Shown here one piece after another: positions 16,995 to 62,374 of a stretch of DNA of 64,000 bases. Made by a program: the position numbers and the translations under genes. The notes below the pieces were generated by a model. The model did not search any database and was not told the DNA's origin. It saw only the letters and a program-made list of their open reading frames with translations. Source of the DNA: Macrostomum lignano (lineage: Eukaryota); the NCBI GenBank assembly GCA_002269645.1, contig NIVC01001228.1:62001-126000 (forward strand), in the 5' to 3' direction. The first letter of the stretch is position 1. Each line of letters starts with the position of its first letter.

Positions 16995-19624
16995 ATGCCA
17001 AAACGAAAGCACGCGTCGCCACTAGTAGAACAGCGTCAACTAAGCGGCAACGACAAAAACAGCAACGCTAATAATAGAGACAGCGAAGGATCTGTGCGAT
17101 CTGTTGAATCGGCAAAATTGCCAACCAATGTGACGCCTGCCGGCACGGAGTCATCGAATCGACTTCAGCCTGCAACCCTGGCTTGCAATCATGTTCGTCC
17201 GGCTCCGTTCAGCGACGATCCAGACGCTCAGGCAATCCTGCAAGCCACTGACTACAGCGTGAAAGTGTCCCTAGAAGACGCTAAAGCTGGCCGCTCTGTC
17301 CGGCCAGTGCGAGTTTACGCTGACGGAATCTACGACATGTTTCATTCTGGTCACGCCCGGCAACTCATGCAAGCTAAGATGGCCTTCCCCAATGCCTATC
17401 TTATTGTTGGTGTGTGCAACGATGTGGATACCCATAGGTGAGGACTTAAGAGATGTCTAAATAGACAGTGACTAATGTCTCAAGCATAACTGGATAGATT
17501 TTTCAACTTTAATTGGTACAAAACAAGCTGAAAATTTGCAGTTTAGCAGTTTTGCTTTTATGCTACTAGTAGTAGTTTTAGTTCAAGAAAATATCAGTAG
17601 ACAGAAAGTAGAATAAAGGCAGGAGGCTGTGTGCAACCTGTCGCACTTTAAGCGACATAGGCACACAACAGGCGAGAGGCATTACTGCCCATTCCGGCAA
17701 CTCCCCTGAGCAGGCACACAAGCGCGCGGATACGTACGCAGTCATACGCACAGGCACACACTCACACAGGAGTGTACAGCGGCCCTAACCCTAAGTTGGC
17801 CCTCAATGACGTTAATTGCACAAGTAGAGCCAAGCCGAGATTCCAATTTAGCCCCCCAAATTAATGTGACTGCACAGGGAATCGAGCCTGGACCGCTTGG
17901 CACATCAGAGCGCCACGGTCGACCACTGGGCTACGCCCCCCCCCCTCCTGTAGATACACAGTAGAATAAATTACAATATGGCTAGGATTGCACAAGAGGT
18001 GTCACACCCATAGTTAAGGCGAAGTTTTTATGTGGTATAAATAATTTTTGTACAAATTTAATGTTTATCCCCTCCTATTGACGCAGAATGAAAGGCAACA
18101 CTGTTATGCGCGAATCTGAACGCTACGAAGCTGTCCGACATTGTCGCTACGTCGACGAAGTCCTACGCGACGCGCCCTGGTCATACGATTATGATTTCTT
18201 GTCGAAGCATAAAATCGATTTTGTCGCCCATGACGACCTACCGTACGGAGCTGGCAACACCGAGGATGTGTACAAATGGATTAAAGATCGGGGCATGTTT
18301 CTTGCCACAGAGCGAACCGAAGGCATCTCTACTACTGACGTCATTGCTCGGATCATTCTGGACTATGACGTCTATTTGCGTAGGAATTTGAAGCGCGGCT
18401 TGTCTAGGAAAGAGCTGGGCATATCCTACATGAAGGAGAAGGAGCTGCAGGTTAAGGTGAGTAACTTGGGGTTGTTCTGAATTGTTGCTGTTTTATTTTT
18501 AATGAGTATTGGATTCATGATAATTAGCGATAGTCTATTAGATAATCAGCGATAGTCTAATTAGATAATTAGCGATAGTCTATTAGATAATCAGCGATAG
18601 TCTAATTAGATAATTAGCGATAGTCTATTAGATAATCAGCGATAGTCTAATTAGATAATTAGCGATAGTCTATTAGATAATCAGCGATAGTCTAATTAGA
18701 TAATTAGCGATAGTCTAATTAGATAATTAGCGATAGTCTATTAGATAATCAGCGATTAGTCTATTAGATAATCAGTGATTAGTCTATTAGATAATTAGCG
18801 ATAGTCTAATTGGATAATTAGCGATAGTGTATTATGAATTAGGTATAGCTTGGCTCATTAGATAATTAAATATCGTTATGCAATTTAGCGATACTTATTA
18901 TCAATGCTCGGTTGTTAAAAGCCAGGCCGCTAAGCCTCTTTGACTGATATGGCAAATCTATTTTGAGGTGTTGTTTTCTCTTAGTTCGCTAAGCCTTGGC
19001 TAATATATGGTAGCAAATCGATATTTTTCAAGATTTTTTTCTACAAGACGATATTTTCTACTTCTAGTTTATTAATTTTTATTTAATCCTTTAATACAGA
19101 TAATGACTATGCCGGTTTTCTGGTAAGAAGATTTCTCTCTACTTCCTCCGCTCTCTCTCTCCTAGGAGACATTCAGCACAATGCGCGACAGGATCGGGCA
19201 GACCAGACGCGAACTAATTGGCAAATGGGAGCAGCAATCGAACAGATTTGTGTCCGGATTTGTTTCCGTATTTGGTCACGACGGCCGGATTAGTCATTGG
19301 GTTCGGGATAAACGGCTGGCCTTTGCCAGGGCTATCAGTCCGGAGTTCGTACAGCTTCAGCAGGGTCCGCAGCAGCAGCAGCCTTCGCTATCTTCATCCT
19401 CAGCTTCGTCTCCGGTTGCTAAGCGAGGCAGACCGTTGCTACCCAGCGGAGCGTCGGTCGGTGCAGCTTTCTCAGACGAGGACGACGAAGAGGAGACGGA
19501 GGATTGGGACACTTTGTTCCCGAAGCTGCGGGCGGCTGCCGCGGTGCAGCACCGGCACCAGCAGACTGGCGGGGGAGGCAGCGGCAGCAGCAGCTCCGGT
19601 AGCAGCGGATCCAATAATGCTTAA
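16995..19624 (+). CDS. PCYT1: Choline-phosphate cytidylyltransferase (CCT)
   Basis: Exons 16995-17437, 18087-18456, 19166-19624 with in-frame GT-AG joins. Motifs [23 protein letters not shown] (HxGH), [39 protein letters not shown]. Confidence 0.96.
17607..17970 (-). mobile_element. tRNA-derived SINE in PCYT1 intron 1 with 11-bp target-site duplication
   Basis: Minus-strand head GGGGCGTAGCCCAGTGG (A box)...CAGGCTCGATTCCC (B box) at ~17875-17938. Direct repeat AGTAGAATAAA at 17607-17617 and 17960-17970. Confidence 0.75.
18518..18830. repeat. 22/23-bp minisatellite ATTAGATAATTAGCGATAGTCT(A) in PCYT1 intron 2
   Basis: Direct reading. Confidence 0.95.
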
Positions 19625-19875
19625 AGATTCTCTGCGTGCATAATTTACCTTTGATGGGGACGTTTGTGTGTGTGTGTGTGGTTTTCATTTCTATCCATCT
19701 TGACATCACCGCGTGTGACTCTTTGTTCGCTCAGACTTAAACTTTAATCTTTAGGGATCGGGGAGTTCTTATCGTAAATTTAACATTAACAATACCTTGG
19801 TACTTTAGAATTAAATATCTAACGTTTATCATTTTTAATTTCCTAAATTTTAAGCTTCCCGTAGAATTTTAGTTT

Positions 19876-20420
19876 TGGGATTCGGTATCTTAGTTGTTGG
19901 GATTCGGTATCTTAGTTGTTGGGATTCGAGATCTTAGTTGTTGGGATTCGGGATCTTAGTTGTTGGGATTCGGGATCTAAGTTTTTGGGATTCGAGATCT
20001 TAGTTGTTGGGATTCGAGATCTAAGTTGTTGGGATTCGAGATCTTAGTTGTTGGGATTCGGGATCTAAGTTTTTGGGATTCGGAATCTTAGTTGTTGGGA
20101 TTCGGGATCTTAGTTGTTGGGATTCGAGATCTTAGTTGTTGGGATTCGGTATCTTAGTTGTTGGGATTCGAGATCTTAGTTGTTGGGATTCGGGATCTTA
20201 GTTGTTGGGATTCGGGATCTTAGTTGTTGGGATTCGGGATCTTAGTTGTTGGGATTCGGGATCTTAGTTGTTGGGATTCGGGATCTTAGTTGTTGGGATT
20301 CGGGATCTAAGTTTTTGGGATTCGGAATCTTAGTTGTTGGGATTCGGGATCTTAGTTGTTGGGATTCGGGATCTTAGTTGTTGGGATTCGGGATCTTAGT
20401 TGTTGGGATTCGGGATCTTA
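19876..20420. repeat. 22-bp minisatellite GGGATTCGGGATCTTAGTTGTT downstream of PCYT1
   Basis: Direct reading. Confidence 0.95.
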
Positions 20421-21239
20421 ATTTTCAGATTTCAAAAATGTTAGTTAAAAACATGCTTCCTTAGTTGAAGGTTTATAGAGGATATATTTTATAATGTAAT
20501 AATATCCTCACCTGTTGCACCCGCGGTACAAACGTGTCGCACAATCGAGTCTGTATGATTTATGGTAATAGAATTGGTGAAGGGCACAGTGTGGTATTAA
20601 AATTCTACAACACTTTAGACTAGAGGTTCTGCTTATACATCATATTGTTTGGAATTGTTTCTAAACACTTAAGTTTGTCTGTCATAGGTAATATCTGACT
20701 TAGTTAGCTGCTGTCATCAATTGTAATTCTTTTTGAGCATAGACAGGTCTCTTCATTAGTCATTTTATTAAGTTTATGCTACTATAAGTAGATGATAGGT
20801 CAGTCAATAAGTCGCAGTATTTAATACGTGTGCGCAAATGTCGGTACATGTTGGTGACATTTGGCAGGAAAAATGTGATTTAATTATTTGAAATAAGTAA
20901 AAAAGCTTATTTGTCATTTTTATCAACTCTGTATCGTTTGGACTTCCGTCAATTTTAAATTTCCCTCGCAAAGTTTTTGTTTCATTTTTTTAGTAGCAAT
21001 CCGACTTGTCGATAATTGCAGTGTGCCGCAATATGTTGAAAATTCAGTGATCTAGTGAAAATAGTTACTGAAATTATTTACCTATACAGTAATAGCAACT
21101 CCTGTTGTATTAAGTAAGCGATCGTTTTTGCACTATCATTTCATTAGTCATTTTTCTGTACTTTTGCTTTTTTGTTGGAAAATTATTGTTTACATTAAAG
21201 TTGATTTTTGATTATATAGACTTCCTGGAACTTCTTCAT

Positions 21240-21592
<353 letters not shown>

Positions 21593-22093
21593 AGTCATTG
21601 TCTATCTTAGTGTCAGTCTTTCTGTCTTGTGTTGTTTTGCGTTCGTTCCAAAATTTAGCGGCTTCTTGCTTTTGCTGAAACTTTGCCATATTATTTATTA
21701 AAAAAAGTTTAATAAATGTGAGATTTGAAGGTCAAATTTAGGTGACAGCTATTTCACTCGGATGCAAAGTGTCCGTAGAATTCATTGTAGTGTCTCTGGC
21801 ATATTGACACCATTCAATTTTGAATTTATGCATGTGCTTGCGCGCTTTTCGTTTTATTAAGATGACTGACTGTCTGGTAATTTTGTTGTCACGAGGGCGA
21901 TGATATAATTTGAGTTTTAAAATAAATTTAAAGTCTTTGCTTTTTGTCAATGCTTTTAATTTTGTTTCTTTTTGGCTTGTTTGGTGAGAAATTATCAGTT
22001 ATATGCATCAATCTGGAATCTGAAGTGGGACATTTTCTAGGGGAGACTTGTTATTATTTAACATAGGAGTGTAGAGGGAGATTATTGAAATTG

Positions 22094-23240
22094 TCAGCAG
22101 GGTAAGAGTGTCAGGTAGGTTGGGAGTGTCAGGTAGATTGAGAGTGTCAGGTAGGTTGGGAGTGTCAGGTAGGTTAAGAGTGTCAGGTAGGTTGGGAGTG
22201 TCAGGTAGATTGAGAGTGTCAGGTAGGTTGGGAGTGTCAGGTAGGTTAAGAGTGTCAGGTAGGTTGGGAGTGTCAGGTAGGTTGGGAGTGTCAGGTAGGT
22301 TAAGAGTGTCAGGTAGGTTGGGAGTGTCAGGTAGGTTGAGAGTGTCAGGTAGGTTGGGAGTGTCAGGTAGGTTGAGAGTGTCAGGTAGGTTGAGAGTGTC
22401 AGGTAGGTTGGGAGTGTCAGGTAGGTTGAGAGTGTCAGGTAGGTTGAGAGTGTCAAGTAGGTTGAGAGTGTCAGGTAGGTTGGGAGTGTCAGGTAGGTTA
22501 AGAGTGTCAGGTAGGTTGGGAGTGTCAGGTAGGTTGAGAGTGTCAGGTAGGTTGGGAGTGTCAGGTAGGTTAAGAGTGTCAGGTAGGTTGGGAGTGTCAG
22601 GTAGGTTGAGAGTGTCAGGTAGGTTGGGAGTGTCAGGTAGGTTAAGAGTGTCAGGTAGGTTAAGAGTGTCAGGTAGGTTGGGAGTGTCAGGTAGGTTAAG
22701 AGTGTCAGGTAGGTTGGGAGTGTCAGGTAGGTTAAGAGTGTCAGGTAGGTTGACAGTGTCAGGTTAAGAGTGTCAGGTAGGTTGGGAGTGTCAGGTAGGT
22801 TAAGAGTGTCAGGTAGGTTAAGAGTGTCAGGTAGGTTAAGAGTGTCAGGTAGGTTGGGAGTGTCAGGTAGGTTGAGTGTCAGGTAGGTTAAGAGTGTCAG
22901 GTAGGTTAAGAGTGTCAGGTAGGTTAAGAGTGTCAGGTAGGTTAAGAGTGTCAGGTAGGTTGACAGTGTCAGGTAGATTGACAGTGTCAGGTAGGTTGAC
23001 AGTGTCAGATAGGTTGACAGTGTCAGGTAGGTTGACAGTGTCAGGTAGGTTGAGTGTCAGGTAGGTTGAGTGTCAGGTAGGTTGAGTGTCAGGTAGGTTG
23101 AGTGTCAGGTAGGTTGAGTGTCAGGTAGGTTGAGTGTCAGGTAGGTTAAGAGTGTCAGGTAGGTTGAGTGTCAGGTAGGTTAAGAGTGTCAGGTAGGTTG
23201 ACAGTGTCAGGTTGAGAGTGTCAGGTAGGTTGAAGGTTGA
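22094..23240. repeat. 18-bp minisatellite GTCAGGTAGGTT(GGG/AAG/GAG)AGT upstream of PITHD1
   Basis: Direct reading, about 60 copies, with 16-bp variants at the 3' end. Confidence 0.97.
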
Positions 23241-23353
23241 CAGTATCGGGTAGGGTGTGTTAAGACGATCTGTTCTAATCGCAGTTTTATAATCTTTCAG
23301 AGAAAGCAGAAGGTAATTATTGTTTTCTAAACGGTGAATTGCAAGAATCAATC

Positions 23354-25264
23354 ATGTCCTGCGGCGGAGACGGCGGCGGCGGCTGTTGCGATGGTCACTC
23401 TCATGTTGACGCCAGCACCGATCAATCGTCAAGATATTGTCTGCATCAGATGATTGACACAGAAAATTTACAATGCCTGAACGAATCAACGCCCGGATCT
23501 TGTAAACTGGTGTTCAGACCTTGGTCAGAGCGGTTGAGTTCGGATAGTTTTGTTGAATCCGACTGCGACGAAGAATTATTGTTTAATGTGCCCTTCACGG
23601 GGGTTGTACGCGCCAAAGGTATTGTGCTGATTGGCGGCGAAGCCGAATCGAGGCCTACTAAAATTCGTCTGTTTCGTAATCGCGAATTTATGACATTCGA
23701 CCAGGCTGGAGCCGAGGCTGACCAAGAGATTGAACTGTGTCCCGATCCTAATGGACTTATCGAGTATAGCTTGAAGCCCACTAAGTTTGGTTCGGTTAGT
23801 ACTGCGTTTATTTTTAGAGGCATGGCTAGATTTTGGTAGCCTGAGTATGTTAGGGTAGATTTTAGTGGTAGTCTGATTAGGTTAGGGTAGGTTTCGGTAT
23901 AGTCTGATTAGGCAGGGTTGATTTTAGTGGTAGTCTGAGTAGGTTAGGGTAGATTTTAGTGGTAGTCTGATTAGGTTAGGGTAGGTTCGGTATAGTCTGA
24001 TTAGGCAGGGTTGATTTTAGTGGTAGTCTGAGTAGGTTAGGGTAGATTTTGGTGGTACCTTAAGTAGGTTAGGGTAGATTTTGATGGTAGCCTGAGTAGG
24101 TTAGGGTAGATTTTGGTGGTACCTTAAGTAGGTTAGGGTAGATTTTTATGGTAGCCTGAGTAGGTTAGGGTAGATTTTGGTGGTACCTTAAGTAGGTTAG
24201 GGTAGATTTTGATGGTAGCCTGAGTAGGTTAGGGTAGATTTTGGTGGTACCTTAAGTAGGTTAGGGTAGATTTTGATGGTAGCCTGAGTAGGTTAGGGTA
24301 GATTTTGGTGGTACCTTAAGTAGGATAGGGTAGATTTTGGTGGTAGCCTGAGTAGGTTAGGGTAGATTTTGGTGGTACCTTAAGTAGGTTAGGGTAGATT
24401 TTGGTGGTACCTTAAGTAGGTTAGGATAGATTTTGATGGTAGCCTGAGTAGGTTAGGGTAGATTTTGGTGGTACCTTAAGTAGGTTAGGATAGATTTTGA
24501 TGGTAGCCTGAGTAGGTTAGGGTAGATTTTGGTGGTACCTTAGTTAAGTAGGATAGGGTAGATTTTGGTGGTAGCCTGAGTAGGTTAGGGTAGATTTTGG
24601 TGGTACCTTTAGTAGGATAGGGTAGATTTTGGTGGTAGCCTGAGTAGGATAGGGTATATTTTGGTGGTAGTCTGAGTAGGTTAGGGTAGATTTTGGTGGT
24701 ACCTTAAGTAGGTTAGGGTAGATTTTGATGGTAGCCTGAGTAGGTTAGGGTAGATTTTGGTGGTAGCCTGAGTAGGATAGGGTAGATTTGGGTGGTAGCC
24801 TGAGTAGGTTAGGGTAGATTTTGGTGGTAGCCTGAGTAGGATAGGGTAGATTTGGGTGGTAGCCTGAGTAGGATAGGGTAGATTTGGGTGGTAGCCTGAG
24901 TAGGTTAGGGTAGATTTTGGTGGTAGCCTGAGTAGGATAGGGTAGATTTTGGAAGTAATTTATGTAGATGGAGCATTTTCACGGACCTACGTAAAATGTT
25001 ATTATTACAGACATTATAATACAGTGTTTATCTTCTAATCCCACCTGTATATTGCAGGTCAGCCATCTGTCAATTCACATATCAAGCAACGCAGGCGGCG
25101 AGACAAGTCGCGTACACTATATTGGTTTACGAGGCGACTTTATTGAGCCGTTCAGGTCTAAGGTGGTGTTAGCTAATTACGAGATCCGGCCTCAGGCATC
25201 TGATCATCAGGCTGGTTCTGATTCTATCGAGTCTGGCTTCAATCAGACTGCCGCTTCTAAATAA
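23354..25264 (+). CDS. PITHD1: PITH domain-containing protein 1
   Basis: Exons 23354-23794 and 25058-25264. Motifs IDTENLQCLNES, VESDCDEELLFNVPFTG, HLSIHISSN...VHYIGLRGDF...NYEIRP. ATG 9 nt after TTGCAAG. Confidence 0.93.
23835..24952. repeat. 32-bp minisatellite GTAGGTTAGGGTAGATTTTGGTGGTAGCCTGA in PITHD1 intron
   Basis: Direct reading, with two alternating variants (...TAGCCTGA / ...TACCTTAA). Confidence 0.95.
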
Positions 25265-25878
25265 TTTGCTCAATAAATCAGTTGTACTAAGCCAGGCATA
25301 AAAAAAGCGCTGAGTCATGTGGGTTAGTTGTACTGAATGCGTTCGGTTCAAACCGAGCAATGCCATGTGTTTTTTGTTCACCTATAACCCTATTCTATGA
25401 CCATTGAACCCTTGGTGACTTTTTTGGTATTCATATGCACTGTGTTCAGTTTCTCTCCTGTCTATTTGTTTGTTCAAGCCCGGTAGGTTGATTCTCAACC
25501 TCTTGTGATTTCTTAATATAAAATTTCTTAATTTCTTATCTTTCTACTCGGGCTGGGGGTGAAGTTCGAGGCAAGAGGGCTCAAAGGTCAGTGAAGAATT
25601 TAGACTGTGTTAAGAGTTCCGTACGAGTTCACTATAACTCAAAGTTTTGTAGCTGCACTGTACGCAAGCAAATAAATTATCTACTCAAGTTGAATAAATT
25701 AGCTTTCAAGCAGTAAATTCTCGCATTTTACTAATGATTTTGCCACACGTGCTCTCTTATTTTTCATTTTTATGCGTAAAATGTTTGTATTTCTACTTGC
25801 AGTAGGCTGATTAGTACTACAATTTTGACTGCGTGCTAATAAATTTGTACAATAATGTTTCCCTTTTTCTGAACAACT

Positions 25879-26691
25879 ATGGCGACTTCATGGCATCCGC
25901 AATCTTGTACTCGTTTTAACAATTTCTGGTCAAACTATTGTACCGTTTGGCGTAACAGCCGGCCCGCTACGCTGCTGAGAGACACCTCAAATGCAAGCGC
26001 TACTAATAGTAGGCTGAATGCTACAGATTCTCATATTAGTCAACAACAAGCGGATTTAAGACGCAGTTTAATAGACGCTGAAAAACGCTATAACGAGCAT
26101 CAAATATCAATTAATCGTCTAACAGAACGAATTGCCGCTCTATACGAGGCCCGTTTAAGATTGTTAACAGTTTGCTCTGAAAGGAAAGCTGGTTTAGACT
26201 CTCCGGTGTTAGTTGAGTATGCTCGTTTACTTGCCGAGCGGCGTAGTGCTGATCAGATTGGTTCTGGCAATGTAGATGGCCTTGATGTTTATGATCAAAT
26301 TGATGTCGAAGAAAAAGAAGAGCCAGCTGTTGAAGAAGAAGAAGAAAATTTGTTGCACTTAGACAAAGGCTACGCAGAGTTTCTCAGACAGTCAGAAGCT
26401 CACAGACATCGACGAGATGCTGCAATTGGCGGAGCTCGCCAACCGAATGGCAACGATGACGGACCGACGGAGACTGTTGAATCGAACCCCGGGTTGCTAG
26501 CCAATAGTTTGCCGCCAACAGTGCAGCCAGGCTTAGAGCGGACTATTGATATGCGCCGGCTGTACGGCCGTCACGCTGCCATTATTCAAGGCATGGAGAC
26601 TGCTATGCAGATGCGATTCGATCAAGCCTGCGATTCCGGAGCTAATAGGCCAGTTTATTGGCCTAGCATGCCTTTGAGACCGCAGTTTTAG
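25879..26691 (+). CDS. GEMIN8: Gem-associated protein 8 (SMN complex), single exon
   Basis: C-terminus MRRLYGRHAAIIQGMETAMQMRFDQACD...PVYWPSMPLR matches the Gemin8 signature (RLYG..A..IQ.ME.A.Q..FD..CD...P.YWP..PL). An acidic stretch is followed by EFLRQSEAHR. Confidence 0.85.
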   Translation: MATSWHPQSCTRFNNFWSNYCTVWRNSRPATLLRDTSNASATNSRLNATDSHISQQQADLRRSLIDAEKRYNEHQISINRLTERIAALYEARLRLLTVCSERKAGLDSPVLVEYARLLAERRSADQIGSGNVDGLDVYDQIDVEEKEEPAVEEEEENLLHLDKGYAEFLRQSEAHRHRRDAAIGGARQPNGNDDGPTETVESNPGLLANSLPPTVQPGLERTIDMRRLYGRHAAIIQGMETAMQMRFDQACDSGANRPVYWPSMPLRPQF

Positions 26692-26811: not shown

Positions 26812-28645
26812 AATCCCAATTCCCAATGTAGATGCTATAGAATCCCAATCTAGATGCTAGATAGAATCCCAATCTAGATGCTATAGAATCCCAATCTAGA
26901 TGCTATAGAATCCCAATCTAGATGCTAGATAGAATCCCAATCTAGATGCTATAGAATCCCAATCTAGATGCTATAGAATCCCATTCTAGATGCTATAGAA
27001 TCCCATTCTAGATGCTATAGAATCCCATTCTAGATGCTATAGAATCCCATTCTAGATGCTATAGAATCCAATTCTAGATGCTATAGAATCCCAATCTAGA
27101 TGCTAGATAGAATCCCAATCTAGATGCTATAGAATCCCAATCTAGATGCTATAGAATCCCAATCTAGATGCTATAGAATCCCAATCTAGATGCTAGATAG
27201 AATCCCAATCTAGATGCTATAGAATCCCAATCTAGATGCTATAGAATCCCATTCTAGATGCTATAGAATCCCATTCTAGATGCTATAGAATCCCATTCTA
27301 GATGCTATAGAATCCCATTCTCGATGCTATAGTCTATAAAATCCCAATCTACATGCTATGGAATCCCAATCTAGAAGCTAAGAATCCCAATCTACATGCT
27401 ATAGAATCCCAATCTAGATGCTATAGAATCCCAATCTAGATGCTAGATAGAATCCCAATCTAGATGCTATAGAATCCCAATCTAGATGCTATAGAATCCC
27501 AATCTAGATGCTAGATAGAATCCCAATCTAGATGCTATAGAATCCCAATCTAGATGCTATAGAATCCCATTCTAGATGCTATAGAATCCCATTCTAGATG
27601 CTATAGAATCCCATTCTAGATGCTATAGAATCCCATTCTAGATGCTATAGAATCCCATTCTAGATGCTATAGAATCCCAATCTAGATGCTAGATAGAATC
27701 CCAATCTAGATGCTATAGAATCCCAATCTAGATGCTATAGAATCCCAATCTAGATGCTATAGAATCCCAATCTAGATGCTAGATAGAATCCCAATCTAGA
27801 TGCTATAGAATCCCAATCTAGATGCTATAGAATCCCATTCTAGATGCTATAGAATCCCATTCTAGATGCTATAGAATCCCATTCTAGATGCTATAGAATC
27901 CCATTCTCGATGCTATAGTCTATAAAATCCCAATCTACATGCTATGGAATCCCAATCTAGAAGCTAAGAATCCCAATCTACATGCTATAGAATCCCAATC
28001 TAGATGCTATAGAATCCCAATCTAGATGCTAGATAGAATCCCAATCTAGATGCTATAGAATCCCAATCTAGATGCTATAGAATCCCATTCTAGATGCTAT
28101 AGAATCCCATTCTAGATGCTATAGAATCCCATTCTAGATGCTATAGAATCCCATTCTAGATGCTATAGAATCCCATTCTAGATGCTATAGAATCCCAATC
28201 TAGATGCTAGATAGAATCCCAATCTAGATGCTATAGAATCCCAATCTAGATGCTATAGAATCCCAATCTAGATGCTATAGAATCCCAATCTAGATGCTAG
28301 ATAGAATCCCAATCTAGATGCTATAGAATCCCAATCTAGATGCTATAGAATCCCATTCTAGATGCTATAGAATCCCATTCTAGATGCTATAGAATCCCAT
28401 TCTAGATGCTATAGAATCCCATTCTCGATGCTATAGTCTATAAAATCCCAATCTACATGCTATGGAATCCCAATCTAGAAGCTAAGAATCCCAATCTACA
28501 TGCTATAGAATCCCATTCTAGATGCTATAGAATCCTATTCTAGATGCTATAGAATCCTATTCTAGATGCTATAGTCTATAGAATCCCAATCTACATGCTA
28601 TAGAATCCGAATCTAGAAGCTAAGAATCCCAATCTAGATGCTAAG
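26812..28645. repeat. 22-bp minisatellite AGAATCCCAATCTAGATGCTAT with higher-order structure
   Basis: Direct reading. The variant block TCGATGCTATAGTCTATAAAATCCC recurs at 27321, 27907 and 28425. Confidence 0.96.
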
Positions 28646-29712: not shown

Positions 29713-29850
29713 GCTCCCTGTTTAGTATTTTTATGTTTGTGGAAGTAACAGTGACAAAGTTAAATTATTATCTTTGTAAATATCTCAAGACCATGTTTAT
29801 TTTTTTATGTTGATTGAAGTCAATTCCAAGGAAAAACGAGAATAAATCCT

Positions 29851-33442: not shown

Positions 33443-33526
33443 GAAATATATAATATCATATCTAGCCTAGGTATCTATCAATAAAAAACTCACTAAAAAC
33501 ATGCATGCCCTTAATAGAGACCAGCC

Positions 33527-50760: not shown

Positions 50761-50851
50761 TTTTGGGATAATGCTCTGTAACTAATTTGAATATATCTGG
50801 GCAAACGTCGTCATGAAAATTTAAGCAGCTGGGGCCGTAAGGGTTTCGTCT

Positions 50852-52085: not shown

Positions 52086-55000
52086 ATGGCTGCAGAAGTT
52101 GATAATGCTGACCAAATGCAGAGCGGTAGTAAGCTATTGATGAATATTGGTTAAAATTAATTAATTGTACATTAATTACGTTAATTAATAAATTCAATTT
52201 CTAGATGAAGCAACGGATAAGGAGAAGCCGGCAACAGATCTGGCGGGAAGTAATCCTTTATCCGAGGAAGAAATGGTTTGTAAAAATTAGCCTTTCTTAC
52301 TACTTACTTATTTCGCGATTTAGTAGTATTGTAAGAAAAAACAAGTTTTTAACGTAATTATTTAAGGCCGAATTGGAAGCATATCGCGTTGAATTGTCCA
52401 CTCGTTACGGCCAGTTAGACGCTCTGTTGCTAGGCAACGAGAATCCTAGCGAGTGCGCAGATTTTCCACCATTCGCCAAGAATGACTCTAGTCTGAAACG
52501 AAATACCGCCTTTGTGAAGAAGCTGGTGAGTTTCGTGTTCAGGAGGCATAAACTATGCGTGATATCATGTTTTATAGCCTAAGATATCAGCACCCCATTT
52601 GAGTCTTGGCAGCTCAGCAACTCCCCCCCCATTTGAGTCTTGGCAGCTCAGCAACTCACCCCCCCCATTTGAGTCTTGGCAGCTCAGCAACTCCCCCCCC
52701 CATTTGAGTCTTGGCAGCTCAGCAACTCCCCCCCCATTTGAGTCTTGGCAGCTCAGCAACTCCCCCCCCCATTTGAGTCTTGGCAGCTCAGCAACTCCCC
52801 CCCATTTGAGTCTTCGCAACTCAGCAACTCCCCCATTTGAGTCTTGGCAACTCAGCAACTCCCCCCCCATTTGAGTCTTGGCAGCTCAGCAACTCCCCCC
52901 CCCATTTGAGTCTTCGCAGCTCAGCAACTCCCCCCATTTGAGTCTTGGCAGCTCAGCAACCCCCCCCAGTTGAGTCTTGGCAACTCAGCAACTCCCCCCC
53001 ATTTGAGTCTTCGCAACTCAGCAACTCCCCCATTTGAGTCTTGGCAGCTCAGCAACTCCCCCCCCCCATTTGAGTCTTGGCAGCTCAGCAACTCCCCCCC
53101 CCCCATTTGAGTCTTGGCAGCTCAGCAACTCCCCCCATTTGAGTCTTCGCAACTCAGCAACTCCCCCATTTGAGTCTTCGCAACTCAGCAACTCCCCCCC
53201 CCATTTGAGTCTTGGCAGCTCAGCAACTCCCCCCCCCATTTGAGTCTTCGCAGCTCAGCAACTCCCCCCATTTGAGTCTTGGCAGCTCAGCAACCCCCCC
53301 CCAGTTGAGTCTTGGCAACTCAGCAACTCCCCCCCATTTGAGTCTTCGCAACTCAGCAACTCCCCCATTTGAGTCTTGCCAGCTCAGCAACTCCCCCCCC
53401 ATTTGAGTCTTCGCAACTCAGCAACTCCCCCATTTGAGTCTTGGCAACTCAGCAACTCCCCCACCCCAGTTGAGTCTTGGCAACTCAGCAACTCCCCCAT
53501 TTGAGTCTTGCCAGCTCAGCAACTCCCCCCCCATTTGAGTCTTGGCAACTCAGCAACTCCCCCCACCCCAGTTGAGTCTTGGCAACTCAGCAACTCCCCC
53601 CATTTTAGTCTCGGCAACTCAGCAACTTGTCTCTGTCGCCTCTGATTTGTGGAGATGCCCAACAGACCCCTAAAAGACTAACAAGCAACCCCATGTTAAT
53701 TAGCGGCACTAGCAAACTCCATCAATTGCTCAAATCCCGCAGAAAAACTACACAGAATCTCAGCGAGACGCCATCATGCGAGAACTGCCAGCCCTGAACC
53801 TGACTAAATACCTTGAAGAAGTTGCCAATGCACTGTTAGAAGCCAAGTTGAAATCTAGCGATCTATCAAGCATCTTGCTAATTAATTGTTTACTAGCTAG
53901 AAACTATGCTGAATACGCTGAATTAGCGCTGGATGCTTGGCGAAAGGTTCTGCTGCCAAAGCAGCAACAACAGCAGCAGCAGCAACCGAAAGAGTCCCAG
54001 CAGAACCAGTGGAATCTGGCTAAACTACGTGTCGATCTCCGTCTATACTCGGATTTAATATTCGCAAAAGTTCTACCAACAATGCCAGCTTTGAAGCTGC
54101 TTGGCCAATGCTTGCAAGCTCTGACATTGAATGACGCGGATTTCTCTCACTGCGGTTTAGTCTGTCACCTGTTGAGCCACTCTGGCGACTCGCTTATTGG
54201 CCAGTTGCCAACTAGAAAACTCGCGCTGGCCAACCGGTGCAGCCCAGCAGTTGAGTTGCCTCGCGGTACTCACTATTTAGAGGCCGAGACCAGGCGTCCG
54301 TTCTATCGATTGTTAACCGAATATGGCAAACGGTTGACCAGCTCACTGACCGACCGGGCTGGCGAGTTGAGTCGGATGGATCGGCAGAATCGGCGAATTT
54401 TGAATAGTAAAGGCGAGCTCAGCCAGGACAGGCGCGACGCTTTTGAGACGTGCAAAAAAGAAGTTGATAGATTGCTTGGTGGGTGACAATTGCAATAAAT
54501 TTTGCTTTTCTTGATTCACTCAACAAAAGTCGGTAGAAATCCCCATAAATCGGTAGAAATCCTCAAATCGGTAGAAATCCCCATACAAATCGGTAGAAAT
54601 CCCCATATAAAACGGTAGAAATCCCCATATAAAACGGTAGAAATCCCCATATAAAACGGTAGAAATCCCCATATAAGTCGGTAGAAATCCCCATATAAAA
54701 CGGTAGAAATCCCCATATAAAACGGTAGAAATCCCCATATAAAACGGTAGAAATCCCCATATAAAGTCTGTAGAAATCCCCATATAAAACGGTAGAAATC
54801 CCCATTTAAACGGTAGAAATCCCCATATAAAACGGTAGAAATCCCCATATAAAACGGTAGAAATCCCCATATAAAACGGTAGAAATCCCCATATAAAACG
54901 GTAGAAATCCCCATATAAAGTCTGTAGAAATCCCCATATAAAACGGTAGAAATCCCCATATAAAACGGTAGAAATCCCCATATAAAACGGTAGAAATCCC

Positions 55001-56978
55001 CATATAAGTCGGTAGAAATCCCCATATAAAACGGTAGAAATCCCCATATAAATCGGTAGAAATCCCCATATAAGTCGGTAGAAATCCCCATATAAAACGG
55101 TAGAAATCCCCATACAAATCGGGGAAATCCCCATGTAAGTGGTAGAAATCCCCATATAAAGCGGTAGAAATCCCCATATAAAACGGTAGAAATCCCCATA
55201 TAAAGCGGTAGAAATCCCCATATAAAGCGGTAGAAATCTCTATTAAAATTGCCAGGCCTGGCCAACCAGCTGTGCAACTTACTCGGCGAGCCAGCTCCCG
55301 AACTGCCGCCAATCGAATCGGACGATCTGGACGAAGAGGAGCGGGCCGTGGCCGACTCTCTGTCTGCCCCGGCCGGAGCGGGTCGCCTCCCAGGCCTGGA
55401 CGAAGCTTCGGGCGTTTTAGGCCGCTTTGAAGACGAGGACGCGAGAGCTTTCTACGAAACTCTGCCAGATTTGAGGCCAATGCTGCCGGAAGTGCTGGTT
55501 AGAGAGGCCAAAGAGCGAATGGAGACTGCTGCTGCGGCTGCTGCTGCTACTAAGCAGGTATAGGCCAGTAGCAGTATAGCAAAGCTACTAATAGTAGCAA
55601 TATAGCAATGCTACTAATAGTAGCAATATATCAATGCTACTTATAGTAGCGATATAGCAATGCTACTAATAGTAGCAAAATAGCAATGCTACTAATAGTA
55701 GCAATATAGCAATGCTACTAATAGTAGCAATATAGCAATGCTACTACTAGTAGCAATATAGCAATGCTACTAATAGTAGCAATATAGCAAAGCTACTAAT
55801 AGTAGCAATATAGCAATGCTACTAATAGTAGCGATATAGCAATGCTACTAATAGTAGCAATATGGCAATGCTACTAATAGTAGCAATATAGCAAAGCTAA
55901 TAATAGTAGCAATATAGAAATGCTACTACTAGTAGCAATATAGCAATGCTACTAATAGTAGCAATATAGCAATGCTACTAATAGTAGCGATATAGCAATG
56001 CTACTAATAGTAGCAATATTGCAATGCTACTAATAGTAGCAATATAGCAATGCTACTAATAGTAGCAATATAGCAATGCTACTAGCAATATAGCAATGCT
56101 ACTAATAGTAGCAACATATAACAGAACTACTTTATTGACTTTTTTCATTAAATAACCTGTAGAAAACAGAAGATTCAATCGCGCTAAAAGAAGAAGAAAC
56201 CGAGCGTCAAGAAGATCAAAGCAAAGCCGAACAGAAATCAGAATCTGCAGAAGCAGACACGGAAGCAGCGGAAGACGATGAAGCCGCTTTAGAACGAGAA
56301 CTGCTCGAAGAGGAAGAGCAGCAAGCGGCTGCGGCGGCAGCGCCTGCGGAGCCCGACAGTGTCGAAACTACCGACGCTACTTCGACCTCGGCCACTGCTC
56401 AGCAAGATGACGATGAAGAATCTGCTGTATTAACTAGCCAACCTGCTGCTCCTGCTCAGACTCAGACTCAGCGCCAGGCTCAGCTAGAGCAGTTCCTGAC
56501 CGCGCTGCCAACTCTTGTCAATCGCGACATGATCGATAAAGCGGCTGTGGAATTTGCCACCGGATTGAATTCCAAATCCGCCAGGAAGCGCCTGAGTCAC
56601 GCCATGCTCACTGTGCACCGCAGCAGGTCCGACCTGCTGCCGTTCTACGCCCGTCTGGCCGCCGTGCTGCAGCCCGTGGCGCCCGAGGTGGCCCAGGAGC
56701 TGCGGCAGCGGCTGCAGGCCGACTTTCGGCACGCTTTTCATAAGAAAGACCACACTAACCTGGAGTCCAAGCTGAAGGTTGGTGCCGCTTGGGCTGTCTG
56801 CCTGTCTGTCTGTCTGTCCGTCTGTGTGTCTGTCTGTCTGTCTGCCTGTCTGTCTGTCTGTCCGTCTGTCTGTCTGTCTGTCTGCCTGCCTGTCTGTCTG
56901 TCCGTCTGGCTGTCTGTCTGTCTGCCTGTCTGTCTGTCTGTGTTTGTGTCTGTGTCTGTCTGTCTGTGTTTGTGTCTG

Positions 56979-57016
<38 letters not shown>

Positions 57017-57231
57017 GCTGTCTGTCTTGCTGCCTGTCTGTCTGCCTGCCTGTCTGCCTGCCTGTCTGTCTGTCTGTCTGTCTGTCTCTCTTTGTGCCTG
57101 TCTGTCTGCCTGTCTGTCTGTCTGCCTGTCTGTCTGTTTGTCGGTCTGTCTGTCTGTTTGCTTGTCTGTCTTTGTGTCTGTCTGTCTGATCTATCTGTCT
57201 GTCTGTGTGTCTGTCTGTCTGTCTGTCTGTA

Positions 57232-57266
<35 letters not shown>

Positions 57267-57309
57267 GTCTGTCTGTCTGTCTGTCTGTAATTCTGTCTGT
57301 CTGTCTGTG

Positions 57310-57347
<38 letters not shown>

Positions 57348-57393
57348 GCTGTCTGTCTTGCTGCCTGCCTGTCTGTCTTCCTGTCTGCCTGCC

Positions 57394-57432
<39 letters not shown>

Positions 57433-57519
57433 GTCTGTCTGTCTGTCTGTCTGCCTGCCTGTCTGTCTTTGTGCCTGTCTGTCTGTCTGTCTGTCTGTCT
57501 GTCTGCCTGCCTGCCTGCC

Positions 57520-57565
<46 letters not shown>

Positions 57566-57598
57566 CTTGTCTGTCTTTGTGTCTGTCTGTCTGATCTA

Positions 57599-57651
<53 letters not shown>

Positions 57652-57992
57652 GTGTCTGTCTGTCTGTCTCTCTGTAATTCTGGCTGTCTGTCTGTGTGTC
57701 TGTCTGTCTGTCTGTCTGTCTGTGTGTCTGTCTGTCTGTCTCTCTGTAATTCTGGCTGTCTGTCTGTGTGTCTGTCTGTCTGTCTGTCTGTCTGTGTGTC
57801 TGTCTGTCTGTCTGTCTGTAATTCTGTCTGTCTGTTTCTCTGTTATTCTGTCTGTCTGTCTGTGTGTCTGTCTGTCTGTCTGTAATTCTGTCTGTCTGTC
57901 TGTGTGTCTGTCTGTCTGTCTGTCTGTAATTCTGTATGTCTGTCTGTGTGTCTGTCTGTCTGTCTGTCTGTAATTCTGTCTGTCTGTCTGTG

Positions 57993-58033
<41 letters not shown>

Positions 58034-61000
58034 TAGACTTTGTAATTCCTATCATTTTATTGCCTAATAAACAATATTGATAACAAAATTCACTCGCTCC
58101 CCGCAGACTGTCAGATTCATCGGAGAGCTGGTCAAATTCGGCCTGTTTCCTTTGGCTGATGCGGCCGCTGATTTGAAATTGCTAATTATTAATTTCAGTC
58201 ATCACAGCATTGAATTGGCTTGCACCCTATTGGAAAGCTGTGGCAGGTATCTGTATGCTACACCTGAGACTCACCTGCGTATTAAGGTGCGTAATTGCTT
58301 TGTTTTATTACGGAATGGCCTGTGATGCTCTCTGATTGGTCAGTGACTGACTGAGCAGCCTGTTGTGCTCTCTGATTGGTCAGTGACTGACTGAGCAGCC
58401 TGTTGTGCTCTCTGATTGGTCAGTGACTGACTGAATACCCTGCGGTGCTCTCTGATTAGTCAGTGACTGACTGAATACCCTGCGGTGCTCTCTGATTGGT
58501 CAGTGACTGACTGAGCGGCATGTGGTGCTCTCTGATTGGTCAGTGACTGACTGAATACCCTGCGGTGCTCTCTGATTAGTCAGTGACTGACTGAATACCC
58601 TGCGGTGCTCTCTGATTAGTCAGTGACTGACTGAATACCCTGCGGTGCTCTCTGATTAGTCAGTGACTGACTGAATACCCTGCGGTGCTCTCTGATTGGT
58701 CAGTGACTGACATTCTCTCTCTTATTAACCCTAATGTTCTTCCCTGCTTCATGGCAACAATTCAGGTGTACCTGCGCAATCTGTGGAACAAGAAGACCAA
58801 GATGGTAACAGACGAACGCCTATCAGCAATGATTGAAAATGCCTATTATTCTGTGGCGCCGCCCGACGCCAACTCTCGTAGATTAGCCAAAGTAGTCCTG
58901 TTGCCGCCAATGATGCAGTTCCTGCAACGGCTGCTGTTCAAGGACCTGTGCAATTCTACCGTTGAAAAGGTGACACACCAGTTGTGTGCTGGCGGGACCT
59001 CTCGGCTAGTGGGAATGCTGCAGTTTTACAAGGATGTGGGGAATTCTTTGATGAGGACCATTGTTTATAGAGTGTGTAATTTTGTAAGGGGAATTATTCA
59101 GCATGAAAATCATTAATCAACAAGGAATTATTTAGCATGAAAAATTATTCATCAACAGGGAGTTATTTAGCATGGGGAATTATTCATCAACAGGGAATTA
59201 TTCAGCATGGGGAATTATTCATCAACAGGGAATTATTTAGCATGAAAAATTATTCATCAACAGGGAGTTATTTAGCATGGGGAATTATTATTCAACAGGG
59301 AATTATTCAGCATGGAGAATTATTCATCAACAGGGAATTATTCAGCATGGGGAATTATTCATCAACAGGGAATTATTCAGCATGGAGAATTATTCATCAA
59401 CAGGGAATTATTTAGCATGGAGAATTATTCATCAACAGGATATTGTTCAGCATGGAGAATTATTTATTAACAGGGAATTATTCTGCATGGAGAATTATTA
59501 ATCAATAGGGAATTATTTAGCATGGGGAATTATTAATCAACATGGAATTATTCAGCATGGAGAATCTTTTTTCAGGAGAAATTATTCATCGAAGAAGAAT
59601 TATTCCAAACAGACAGGATAAACAAATGCTAACACCTCAAACCCCCCAGGTGCTGAACCTGTGCCTCCGGCTGCCCTGGACTGATCCAAAAATCTCCCAA
59701 TTTGCTGTCCGCTGTTTCACCAGCGTCTGGTGCATCCCCTACAGCTCTGTGCACTGCCTGGCCTCAGTCCTGGCCGGTCTGGCACCCTACCAACCGTCAG
59801 TTGCCATAGCCGTAGTTGACAACGTGCTGGAAGACATTCGCCTCGGCATGGAGATTAACGAGACTCGATTGAATCAACGCAGAATAGCTTGCTCCAGATA
59901 CCTGGGCGAGCTGTACAACTACTGCCTAGTTGAGAGCGGGCTGATATTTAATACTTTGCATTCTTTTATATCCTTTGGTGTAGACCTGTCCGATCCTACC
60001 GCTCCTGAGCAGTCTTCTCAACCTCCGGCAGCCGATTACATTTCGCTTGATCCTCCCGAGCATCTACTCAGGATTCGTCTGTCGTGTGTTCTGTTGCAGA
60101 CTTGCGGGCAGTACTTCGACACAGGCTCTAATAAGAAGCGCCTAGACGCCTACCTGCTCTACTTGCAGCAGTATTATTGGTCTAAACGGCGGCAATTAGT
60201 TTGGTCTAGCGAGGATCGACCGTTTCCTTTAGATATCGAATATCTCTACACAGAGACTGTGGACTCTTTGAGGCCGAAATTTAAGCACGCAAATAATTTT
60301 CAAGAGGCCAGATTGTTAGTTGACAAGCAGGAGAAAGCTTTTCTTGCTAAGCTTGGTAAGTTTTTTATCTTGGAGGAGTTGCCGGTGCATTAAAATAAAA
60401 TCTCCAAATCCCTAATCCCATATTCCAGATCCCTAATCCCACATTCCAGATCCCTAATCCCATATTCCAAATCCCTAATCCCATATTCCAGATCCCTAAT
60501 CCCATATTCCAAATCCCTAATCCCATATTCCAGATCCCTAATCCCATATTCCAGATCCCTAATCCCATATTCCAAATCCCTAATCCCATATTCCAGCACC
60601 CTAAATCCCATATTCCAGATCCCTAAATCCCATATTCCAGATCCCTAATCCCATATTCCAGCACCCTAAATCCCATATTCCAGATCCCTAAATCCCATAT
60701 TCCAGATCCCTAATCCCATATTCCAGCACCCTAAATCCCATATTCCAGATCCCTAAATCCCATATTCCAGATCCCTAAATCCCATATTCCAGATCCCTAA
60801 TCCCATATTCCAGATCCCAATCCCATATAGATCCATAATCCCGGATCCCAGATCCCATATTCCAGGTCCCTAATCCCATATTCCAGGTCCCTAATCCCAT
60901 ATTCCAGGTCCCTAATCCCATATTCTAGATCCCAATCCCAGATCTCGTGACTCTTTTGCTCTAAGTCTGCAGCTCTTGCCCTCTTGATTAAGCCCAAGGG

Positions 61001-62374
61001 CAAACCCTAACCCAAATCATTCGCAGAACGCGTGGCCGCCAAGCTTCAACAGCAAAGCGACACAGCAGCTCGCGGTCAGCTGACCACGATAGTTGAAGCC
61101 TCCGGCGCCGCAGGTGCCACCTCGACAGCTTCGGGCACGTCAGCGACTGAAGACGAAGACGATGAGGACGATGATGATGAAGAAGAGGACGGAGATGACG
61201 AAAGAGGCGGCGGGAAGCGACGTTCCGGTGGACGGAATCATCGTCGGGATGACGCTGGCACCGACGGTGATAATCCGGAAGGCGAAGACGACGCCGACAG
61301 AGCATCATCGAACTCGGCGACTCCCCAGCGGCGACAGTCGCCCAGGCCGGAGCTGATGGCCTGCCCGGAGGACGAGGAATTCGTTCGAGCTTTCGAACGA
61401 ACTCTGGCTGTGGAAGGTGGCGTGGGCGGCGGCGGCGTCGGCGGCGGCGTCGGTGGCCCGCCCGGGTTTCTGTCCGCTTCCGGCGATCCGAATTCCGTCG
61501 CCTGTGCCTCCAATTCTCCAGCCGCTGACGCTCCGGCTGCTGGCACCGTGGCCTTCACCGTCATGGCCCGCCGTGGCGGCAGCTCGCGCAACCAGCCTGT
61601 GGTGCGGCTGCCGGCCGACAGCCACCTGGCCAGGCGTTACCTGGCCGCCGTTGAAGCCGACGCCAGAGAGCGAGAGGCTGTCAAACGAGCCACGCTGAGC
61701 ATCACGGAGGCGCAGATGCGGCGAGACGAAGCTGCGGATGAGGCGGCAGCGGCAGCTGCGATTGCCGATGCGGAGGTGCCGCATCTCATCGGCCACAGGC
61801 AGCGCGGCGGCGGCGGCGGGCGCTGGCAGCACCGACAGGGCGGAGCTGGCAGGTAATTGGCGTGCGGGTCTGTGTCCCAGATCCCCAGTTTCTGGGCCAG
61901 CCTCCCAGATCCTCAGTTGCTGGGCCAGCCTCCCAGATCCCCAGTTGCTGAGCCAGCCTCCCAGATCCCCAGTTGCTGGGCCAGCCTCCCAGATCCTCAG
62001 TTGCTGAGCCAGCCTCCCAGATCCCCAGTTGCTGGGCCAGCCTCCCAGATCCTCAGTTGCTGGGCGAGCCTCCCAGATCCTCAGTTGCTGGGCGAGCCTC
62101 CCAGGTCCTCAGTTGCTGGGCGAGCCTCCCAGATCCCCAGTTGCTGGGCGAGCCTCCCAGATCCTCAGTTGCTGGGCGAGCCTCCCAGATCCTCAGTTGC
62201 TGGGCGAGCCTCCCAGATCCCCAGTTGCTGGGCGAGCCTCCCAGATCCCCAGTTACTGGGCCAGCCTCCCAGATCCCCAGTTACTGGGCCAGCCTCCCAA
62301 ATCCTCAGTTGCTGGGCCAGGAAAAACCGCTTCTACAAGCTAAGCAGCAATTAAATTTCATTTCCAGATATTGA
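52086..62374 (+). CDS. UPF2: Regulator of nonsense transcripts 2 (three MIF4G domains, acidic/low-complexity tail)
   Basis: Proposed exons 52086-52128, 52205-52275, 52367-52525, 53743-54478, 55256-55557, 56163-56777, 58107-58286, 58766-58969, 59650-60355, 61027-61852, 62368-62374, all phase-consistent. Motifs [94 protein letters not shown]. The first two exons and the last 7-nt exon are tentative (alternative stop at 61856). Confidence 0.95.
52590..53628. repeat. ~31-34-bp minisatellite ATTTGAGTCTTGGCAGCTCAGCAACT(C)n in UPF2 intron 3
   Basis: Direct reading, with a variable C-run. Confidence 0.96.
54530..55240. repeat. 22-bp minisatellite GGTAGAAATCCCCATATAAAAC in UPF2 intron 4
   Basis: Direct reading. 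Confidence 0.96.
55575..56115. repeat. 26-bp minisatellite GCAATATAGCAATGCTACTAATAGTA in UPF2 intron 5
   Basis: Direct reading. Confidence 0.96.
56795..58035. repeat. (TCTG)n microsatellite in UPF2 intron 6
   Basis: Direct reading. Confidence 0.97.
58323..58710. repeat. 40-bp minisatellite ...GCTCTCTGATTGGTCAGTGACTGACTGA... in UPF2 intron 7
   Basis: Direct reading, about 9-10 copies. Confidence 0.95.
59085..59590. repeat. 35-bp minisatellite CAGCATGGAGAATTATTCATCAACAGGGAATTATT in UPF2 intron 8
   Basis: Direct reading. Confidence 0.94.
60405..60940. repeat. 21/22-bp minisatellite CCCATATTCCAGATCCCTAAT in UPF2 intron 9
   Basis: Direct reading. Confidence 0.95.
61870..62320. repeat. 28-bp minisatellite CTGGGCGAGCCTCCCAGATCCTCAGTTG in the putative last UPF2 intron
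   Basis: Direct reading. Confidence 0.95.

Follow-up and report, generated by a model that had tools for sequence, protein, structure and literature searches.

The 64,000-nt stretch analyzed here, referred to as the window, comprises positions 62001 to 126000 of contig NIVC01001228.1 in the Mlig_3_7 assembly of the flatworm Macrostomum lignano (GCA_002269645.1). It carries a run of eleven housekeeping genes, PCYT1, PITHD1, GEMIN8, DCPS, RPL37A, RPL36A, SREK1, PEX12, MED10, NUB1, and UPF2, all on the plus strand (Table 1), which a preliminary description had read as a single ~45-kb, 11-cistron unit resolved by spliced leader (SL) trans-splicing. The gene identities and common orientation proposed there are borne out by Pfam (CTP_transf, PITH, GEMIN8, DcpS, L37ae, L44, RRM, Pex2_Pex12, Med10, UBA, and MIF4G matches), by flatworm “arginine/serine-rich splicing factor 12” matches to SREK1, and by the deposited annotation. 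Our analysis indicates that the genes are probably SL trans-spliced and transcribed polycistronically, in blocks.

The assembly contains the whole region in two further, paralogous copies, copy B (NIVC01000382.1) and copy C (NIVC01000013.1), with 87 to 98% identity to the window and the same gene order. From PCYT1 to UPF2, annotated coding sequences (CDSs) lie exclusively on the plus strand in all three, the arrangement expected of an operon; this count covers the CDSs left after noncoding and repeat-overlapping transcripts had been removed from the deposited annotation. The accessions from PAA70547 (PCYT1) to PAA70556 (NUB1) are exactly 10 numbers for 10 genes, leaving no room for an additional CDS. 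Copy C has exactly nine annotated CDSs within the gene run.

Cis-spliced introns occur in six of the eleven genes. The rebuilt models equal the deposited proteins exactly for DCPS (365 amino acids [aa]; PAA70550.1, Mlig029688g1) and for the partial PCYT1 (426 aa), PITHD1 (232 aa), GEMIN8 (272 aa), PEX12 (351 aa), and NUB1 (667 aa; PAA70556.1) products. An exact-protein look-up returned no record for ATG-to-stop models of PEX12, MED10, PCYT1, and NUB1; the deposited CDSs are 5′ partial and begin at transcript ends. Splice-site enumeration gave 12 ambiguous solutions for the deposited 572-aa SREK1, two of which were looked up and neither of which was on record, and no solution for the deposited 1,282-aa UPF2. 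The UPF2 start had initially been placed at 53776; the deposited CDS, which begins at 52086, and the 5′ exons (three small ones before 52530, with a conserved region, and the next from 53743) move it to 52086, so that the NUB1-UPF2 spacer is 1,325 bp rather than the ~3 kb supposed earlier. The 3′ end of UPF2 may lie at 61856 (...GGAGR) or, if a last intron at 61851-62367 is removed, at 62374 (...GRY); this alternative intron (donor CAG/GTAATT at 61850/61851, acceptor TTTCCAG/ at 62367; slashes mark splice junctions) is composed of a 28-bp tandem array.

Trans-splice acceptors and polishing footprints

Resolution of polycistronic pre-mRNA by SL trans-splicing, which the preliminary description cited for flatworms in general, is known for M. 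lignano itself, which uses a single SL and the acceptor motif [T/C]TNCAG (PMC8629364). To locate acceptors, the preliminary description had relied on AG dinucleotides 0 to 10 nt before start codons. Such an AG precedes 47% (nonrepeat) to 59% (all) of the 1,025 ATGs in the window, which is not above chance; with about half of all ATGs so placed, AG proximity is uninformative. We compared the 160-nt sequences preceding the start codons across the window, copy B, and copy C by alignment. At eight genes, one copy has a canonical acceptor and another has, at the identical position, the 3′ end of the SL (TGCATG, ATG, or CTG; Table 1). In the window, the overwritten positions are 25870 and 46548 (single bases) and 29807-29809, 32412-32417, 33502-33507, 42042-42047, and 44850-44855.

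The multibase changes all run toward the SL, which excludes ordinary divergence. Mlig_3_7 was polished by Pilon with Illumina DNA reads and RNA-seq data (PMC5730564), and the simplest cause would be SL-bearing RNA-seq reads aligned end to end in Pilon. Judging from the copy comparison, acceptors in the assembly have most likely been replaced by the last one to six bases of the SL through this polishing. Artifact or otherwise, the footprints mark the sites where SL-carrying reads pile up. A scan of patterns alone found TGCATG, TTGCATG, and ATTGCATG at about chance frequency, so the comparison between paralogues is needed to recognize them, and single A-to-T differences between copies are a common background on both strands. 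Overwritten acceptors were likewise seen at loci L004, L007, L008, L011, and L001 (16555-16563), the affected sites differing between paralogous copies, and a diverged RPL36A paralogue on a fourth contig carries TGCATG as well, 17 nt before its ATG.

Annotated 5′ ends point to the same sites; in the published annotation, mapped SL and poly(A) sites served to divide transcriptional units into genes (PMC5730564). Deposited 5′-partial CDSs begin at, or within 1 to 2 nt of, the acceptors of PCYT1, PITHD1, GEMIN8, and, in copy B, PEX12, MED10, and NUB1. The annotated PCYT1 transcript starts directly after AAAAAAAG/ (16983-16984), with its CDS from 16986 (PAA70547.1, Mlig001873g1). The PITHD1 CDS starts at 23303, 2 nt past the acceptor, in the window and in copy C, and a copy B chimera described below has the same start; that of GEMIN8 starts at 25873. 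In copy B, the 163-aa partial MED10 CDS (RESPSP...) begins directly after TTCCAG/ and the 671-aa partial NUB1 CDS exactly after CTTCAG/. Together, footprints read against intact paralogue acceptors and annotated 5′ ends provide indirect but specific support for SL addition at 10 of the 11 genes. Nine of the ten downstream genes are among these; the tenth, UPF2, has a conserved predicted acceptor, CTTTTCAG/, 75 nt upstream of its ATG. As to the five AG sites named at first, TTTGCAG/ of SREK1 stands, and those of PITHD1, RPL37A, RPL36A, and MED10 give way to supported acceptors elsewhere, an understandable error since the true AG is overwritten in the window at seven genes.

At two genes the footprints bear on the start codon itself. 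The PEX12 site reads TTCATG/GCT in the window, TGCATG/GCT in copy B, and TTCCAG/GCT in copy C; the “ATG” at 42045-42047 is thus a CAG acceptor that was overwritten. The 363-aa partial PEX12 CDS of copy B begins exactly at this GCT, and with an exon that starts there the initiator would have to be the AUG of the SL. At NUB1, whose exon begins at 46550, the SL AUG falls in frame (M-EEQELLHKL...), and the conserved motif KLWEPPYT precedes the next in-frame Met; an ATG that might be taken for the NUB1 start, at 46526, is in the last 29-bp satellite unit, upstream of the acceptor. PEX12 and NUB1 thus appear to be without a genomic start codon of their own and to need the in-frame terminal AUG of the SL for their conserved N-terminal residues to be translated, which makes them clear candidates for translation dependent on an SL-donated AUG. 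In MED10 the SL AUG is also in frame, and there is an internal ATG at 44883.

The overwriting matters for users of the Mlig_3_7 reference: AG acceptors are lost at these sites and spurious ATGs arise, the PEX12 “start codon” being one. The reported share of acceptor sites with the [T/C]TNCAG motif may be too low for the same reason. Conversely, a polishing artifact read against a paralogous copy is a map of SL sites obtained without RNA data.

Co-transcription, spacers, and candidate promoters

About 7% of the transcriptional units assembled for M. lignano represent precursors in which several SL sites occur (PMC5730564). A copy B deposit, PAA84282.1, is a 503-aa PITH-GEMIN8 chimeric protein with one canonical-splice solution: donor TCTAA/GTAATT at the PITHD1 stop codon and acceptor TTTTTCAG/AACAACTATG, the SL acceptor of GEMIN8. 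The deposited protein shows the predicted junction (...AASK/TTMATSW...), so that in copy B PITHD1 and GEMIN8 belong to a single pre-mRNA.

Gene names extend the linkage, because one name prefix is given to all units that fall into a cluster at 95% identity (PMC5730564). Prefix Mlig001873 is carried by PCYT1 (g1 in the window, g2 in copy C), PITHD1 (g3 in copy C, adjacent to g2), and the chimera (g5 in copy B). That a PCYT1-only unit and a PITHD1-GEMIN8 unit share it would imply a longer unit containing both, and hence an assembled unit that spans PCYT1-PITHD1. Prefix Mlig029688 is common to DCPS (g1 in the window, g6 in copy C) and PEX12 (g8 in copy B); by the same naming rule, we infer that one assembled unit spans the five genes from DCPS to PEX12. 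MED10 (Mlig020247) and NUB1 (Mlig018107, Mlig034491, Mlig025284) have other prefixes, so that the assembled units break between GEMIN8 and DCPS, between PEX12 and MED10, and between MED10 and NUB1. Each of these breaks coincides with ~1 to 2.4 kb of arrays. A search of the papers and their supplements for the Mlig gene identifiers gave no match.

The spacers are as first described, 614 to 3,938 bp from stop to ATG and rich in repeats (607 to 3,941 nt from stop to acceptor); Tandem Repeats Finder (TRF) assigns 47% of 16995-62374 to tandem repeat. After subtraction of TRF repeats, the stop-to-acceptor lengths, 3′ untranslated regions (UTRs) included, are 1,643, 607, 754, 800, 364, 523, 1,053, 599, 249, and 502 nt in order, i.e., 249 to 1,053 nt at nine of the ten junctions. 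Published M. lignano operon spacers are likewise inflated by repeats, with a mode of ~100 bp after repeat subtraction and a 1-kb cut-off (PMC8629364). Eight junctions fall under that length, as does SREK1-PEX12 once a 3′ UTR of ~170 nt is removed; PCYT1-PITHD1 would do so only if its spacer held RepeatMasker elements.

Several features of the spacers are worth recording. The unique segments between the PCYT1-PITHD1 arrays have 97 to 98% identity to copy C. In SREK1-PEX12 there is a unique AT-rich segment (40719-41417), and the array is ~2 kb shorter in copy B. Each unique spacer segment matched just its orthologous place in the paralogues when dispersed repeats were sought against a very small reference set. 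Satellites of one family (core CCCTATGACCGATTA) are found in two of the spacers, at 43236-43350 and 45588-46540. Splice-site-like motifs are present in every unit of the arrays 5′ of SREK1 (34282-35027, CTGCAG and GTGAGT), NUB1 (45588-46540, TTCTGTAG), and PITHD1 (22105-23233, CAGGTAGGT), so that an outron transcript would carry dozens of decoy sites. Arrays are also found in introns, with a 32-bp one in PITHD1 and (TGTC)n and a 21-bp array in SREK1. The displaced 106-bp RPL37A fragment in the RPL36A-SREK1 spacer is shared by copy B; the alignment with copy C ends just before it. RPL37A and RPL36A are also co-oriented, separated by a WW/CUE-domain gene, at a fourth, more diverged locus (NIVC01001884.1 [L001], 10001-16888), which indicates that their pairing predates the recent duplications.

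The TATA region before PCYT1 is identical in the three copies, and in copies B and C the 10 kb upstream of it contain no annotated gene; on this basis we regard it as a candidate promoter. The preliminary description had noticed a TATA candidate only here, but TATAWAWR occurs at six further plus-strand sites (28752, 28960, 32099, 32109, 41257, and 52034). The TATA-like motifs 5′ of DCPS (28752, 28960), RPL37A, and PEX12 are conserved between copies and those of RPL36A and UPF2 are not. The number of sites is near that estimated for AT-rich spacer sequence, so that internal promoters are neither backed nor excluded by it.

Upstream of PCYT1, some 4.5 kb (12520-16994) is very AT rich (24% GC at 14 to 16 kb) and matches copies B and C at ~97% identity, a value that the repeat-rich spacers fall well short of. 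Pfam found nothing significant in the open reading frames (ORFs) of 1-16,900 or in the minus-strand ORF 33629-34051. Several minus-strand ORFs of 90 to 120 aa lie within 7590-8862, one of which (8494-8862) has a weak CUB match (E = 0.029); a minus-strand gene here may form the left boundary of the cluster. Rfam and tRNA scans of the window found no RNA gene and no tRNA.

Table 1. Genes, candidate promoter, and tandem arrays of the run, in window coordinates
Feature	Positions	Strand	Intact acceptor	Overwritten acceptor	Details
PCYT1 candidate core promoter, TATA box GGGACTATATATAAATCTAGCTCAC	16880..16904	+			~100 nt 5′ of annotated PCYT1 end; identical in 3 copies
PCYT1 (choline-phosphate cytidylyltransferase)	16985..19624	+			Exons 16995-17437, 18087-18456, 19166-19624; Pfam, splice model
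PITHD1	23294..25264	+			SL acceptor CTTTCAG/ ends 23300; CDS 23354-23794, 25058-25264; Pfam PITH
GEMIN8	25864..26691	+	TTTTTCAG (copies B, C)	TTTTTCTG (window)	Acceptor remnant ends 25871; CDS 25879-26691
DCPS	29803..31514	+	TTTTCAG (copy B)	TTTTATG (window), TTCATG (copy C)	Overwritten acceptor ends 29809; CDS 29851-30695, 31262-31514
RPL37A	32412..32730	+	TTCCAG (copy B)	TGCATG (window)	SL footprint 32412-32417; CDS 32452-32730; Pfam L37ae
RPL36A (L44e)	33502..33844	+	TTCCAG (copies B, C)	TGCATG (window)	SL footprint 33502-33507; CDS 33527-33844; Pfam L44
SREK1 (SFRS12-like)	35107..38106	+	TTTGCAG (window, copy B)	TTGCATG (copy C)	Acceptor ends 35113; CDS 35116-35718, 36389-36681, 37251-38106
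PEX12	42042..43139	+	TTCCAG (copy C)	TTCATG (window), TGCATG (copy B)	Exon from 42048; Pfam Pex2_Pex12 and RING
MED10	44850..45347	+	TTCCAG (copy B)	TGCATG (window, copy C)	SL footprint 44850-44855; exon from 44856; stop 45347; Pfam Med10
NUB1	46544..50760	+	CTTCAG (copies B, C)	CTTCTG (window)	Acceptor remnant ends 46549; exons 46550-46979, 47397-47671, 48328-48589, 49226-49695, 50182-50760; Pfam UBA
UPF2	52005..62374	+			Predicted acceptor CTTTTCAG/ ends 52011, conserved in 3 copies; CDS from ATG 52086; Pfam MIF4G
PCYT1-PITHD1 spacer arrays	19869..23233				22-bp 19869-20420, (TCTC/TCTG)n 21241-21592, 18-bp 22105-23233; TRF
GEMIN8-DCPS spacer arrays	26821..29714				518-bp period 26821-28646, 22-bp 29177-29714; unique segment 28647-29176; TRF
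Displaced 106-bp RPL37A coding fragment	34156..34261	+			RPL36A-SREK1 spacer; adjoins 43-bp array 34282-35027; 99% identical to 32503-32608
SREK1-PEX12 spacer arrays	38345..41941				23-bp 38345-40718, 28-bp 41418-41564, (TATC)n 41575-41941; TRF
PEX12-MED10 spacer array, 24-bp	43838..44839				TRF
29-bp satellite (GCTATACCCTATGACCGATTATTCTGTAG) reaching NUB1	45588..46540				TRF and sequence
NUB1-UPF2 spacer array, 23-bp	50850..51598				TRF

Blocks, one unit, or separate genes

Overall, the data are best accounted for by a cluster of SL-trans-spliced housekeeping genes that is transcribed polycistronically in blocks, a reading that we hold to be likely. Continuity is supported by the chimeric mRNA for PITHD1-GEMIN8 and, through shared prefixes, for PCYT1-PITHD1 and for DCPS through PEX12, giving blocks of at least two or three genes, PCYT1-PITHD1(-GEMIN8), and of five genes; the window copy would behave as its paralogues do. 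RNA polymerase II would start at the TATA promoter ~100 nt upstream of PCYT1, and possibly also at internal promoters, and read through the kilobase-scale, satellite-filled spacers. The pre-mRNA would then be resolved into single-gene mRNAs by 3′ end formation upstream and addition of the 35-nt SL at a [T/C]TNCAG-type acceptor 0 to 54 nt upstream of each coding region, with PEX12 and NUB1 initiating at the terminal AUG of the SL and MED10 receiving it in frame.

A number of observations weigh against this reading. SL use is deduced from polishing artifacts and annotation boundaries, and the footprints of GEMIN8 and NUB1 are single A-to-T changes, of a kind that arises elsewhere by chance. The donor used by the chimeric mRNA is missing in the window, where the PITHD1 stop region (25258-25264) reads AAATAA versus AAGTAA in copies B and C, and only AAGTAA supplies the GT. 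That a shared prefix denotes a spanning unit is itself deduced, and assembled units can merge neighbors via read-through or repeat-derived reads. The repeat-adjusted spacers, ~250 to 1,640 nt, are far over the ~100-nt mode of operon spacers, and PCYT1-PITHD1 exceeds the published 1-kb cut-off when TRF repeats alone are subtracted. The conserved TATA-like motifs 5′ of DCPS, RPL37A, and PEX12 make internal promoters possible. Finally, unique spacer segments are 95 to 98% conserved between copies, compared to 93% for unique intron sequence; UTRs and processing signals could account for this no less than promoters.

Should these doubts be taken to their conclusion, the eleven genes would be transcribed independently, most of them as trans-spliced monocistronic units, their orientation being due to chance or a historical residue. 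About 60% of SL-trans-spliced genes in M. lignano do lie outside operons (PMC8629364), and the long spacers, with conserved unique segments and TATA-like motifs, would fit. The figure of 1/1024 given for the common orientation is arithmetically right, but by our estimate runs of eleven co-oriented genes are expected dozens of times by chance among ~70,000 gene models. Synteny in related species, proposed as a check, is lacking around SREK1, whose neighbors are unrelated in Hymenolepis diminuta and Fasciolopsis buski; the cluster is therefore without deep conservation. Searches with MED10 and UPF2 returned no other Macrostomum species among the matches. Against independent transcription, the PITHD1-GEMIN8 chimeric mRNA needs both genes on one pre-mRNA, shared prefixes tie PCYT1 to PITHD1 and DCPS to PEX12, and the run is free of opposite-strand genes in three of three copies. 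On balance we find it improbable that the genes form no operon at all.

The preliminary description went the other way, to one PCYT1 promoter and one ~45-kb pre-mRNA with all eleven cistrons, a special case of transcription in blocks. Its co-transcription stands for the blocks, whereas nothing shows a single unit and the prefixes differ at three junctions, setting MED10, NUB1, and the GEMIN8 and DCPS sides apart. In its favor, no TATA in a promoter-like position other than that of PCYT1 is both shared unchanged by the three copies and preceded by gene-free sequence for 10 kb or more; SL acceptors are present, or plausible, at each of the ten downstream genes; and two of these genes appear to lack an AUG of their own. 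Nine of the ten junctions are under or near the published 1-kb repeat-adjusted limit, and the three prefix breaks, with their arrays, are where assembled units would tend to split, as they do in repeat-rich operon spacers (PMC8629364). Other evidence disagrees: conserved TATA-like motifs and unique spacer sequence lie 5′ of DCPS, RPL37A, and PEX12, and two ribosomal-protein genes among normally low-expressed genes would be awkward, though possible, for one promoter. The unusual length claimed for the operon has to be weighed against the genome-wide maximum of nine genes in the same assembly (PMC8629364). A single unit is thus conceivable but doubtful. If it were real, it would be the largest and longest flatworm operon reported; ~18 kb of intercistronic satellite arrays (~21 kb including intron arrays) would be transcribed and discarded, the PEX12 and NUB1 cistrons would depend wholly on the SL for their start codon, and the locus would be a good test case for SL operons tolerating kilobases of satellite DNA between cistrons.

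Comparison with known polycistronic systems

With the polycistronic units of kinetoplastids the cluster shares a long co-oriented run, trans-splicing of every mRNA, and the adjoining of unrelated functions. Kinetoplastid units consist of tens to hundreds of essentially intronless genes and are without conventional promoters; here there are eleven genes, six with cis-spliced introns, and a conserved TATA before the first. The SL2-type operons of Caenorhabditis elegans resemble the arrangement proposed here in having one promoter for several cistrons, 3′ end formation coupled to SL trans-splicing, and an enrichment in housekeeping genes. They differ by their dedicated SL2 for downstream genes, ~100-nt spacers, and 2 to 8 genes (cited in PMC8629364), as opposed to a single SL and kilobase satellite spacers (249 to 1,643 nt without tandem repeats) at this locus.

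Closer parallels are found in parasitic flatworms (PMC12582326), where the SL also ends in AUG and can give the start codon, cis-splicing makes use of SL acceptors as well, polycistronic pre-mRNAs give rise to chimeric models, and intergenic distances reach several kilobases. Their operons are mostly of two genes with spacers of ≤300 bp, the candidates having nine genes at most, and there is no synteny around SREK1. Closest of all are the SL operons of M. lignano itself (Ustyantsev and Berezikov 2021, PMC8629364; Wudarski et al. 2017, PMC5730564), which comprise 15% of its genes and are described from the same assembly. These too consist of co-oriented conserved housekeeping genes, with a 35-nt SL ending in AUG, [T/C]TNCAG acceptors, spacers inflated by simple repeats, and precursors with several SL sites. 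The differences are spacers of hundreds of nucleotides rather than a ~100-nt mode, one of them (PCYT1-PITHD1) over 1 kb with tandem repeats alone subtracted, and a run that by the published operational definition could count ten or eleven genes against nine. With its nine annotated CDSs in copy C, the locus may correspond to one of the two nine-gene operons already published. The cluster is, in sum, a long representative of the operons known from M. lignano and not a new kind of system.

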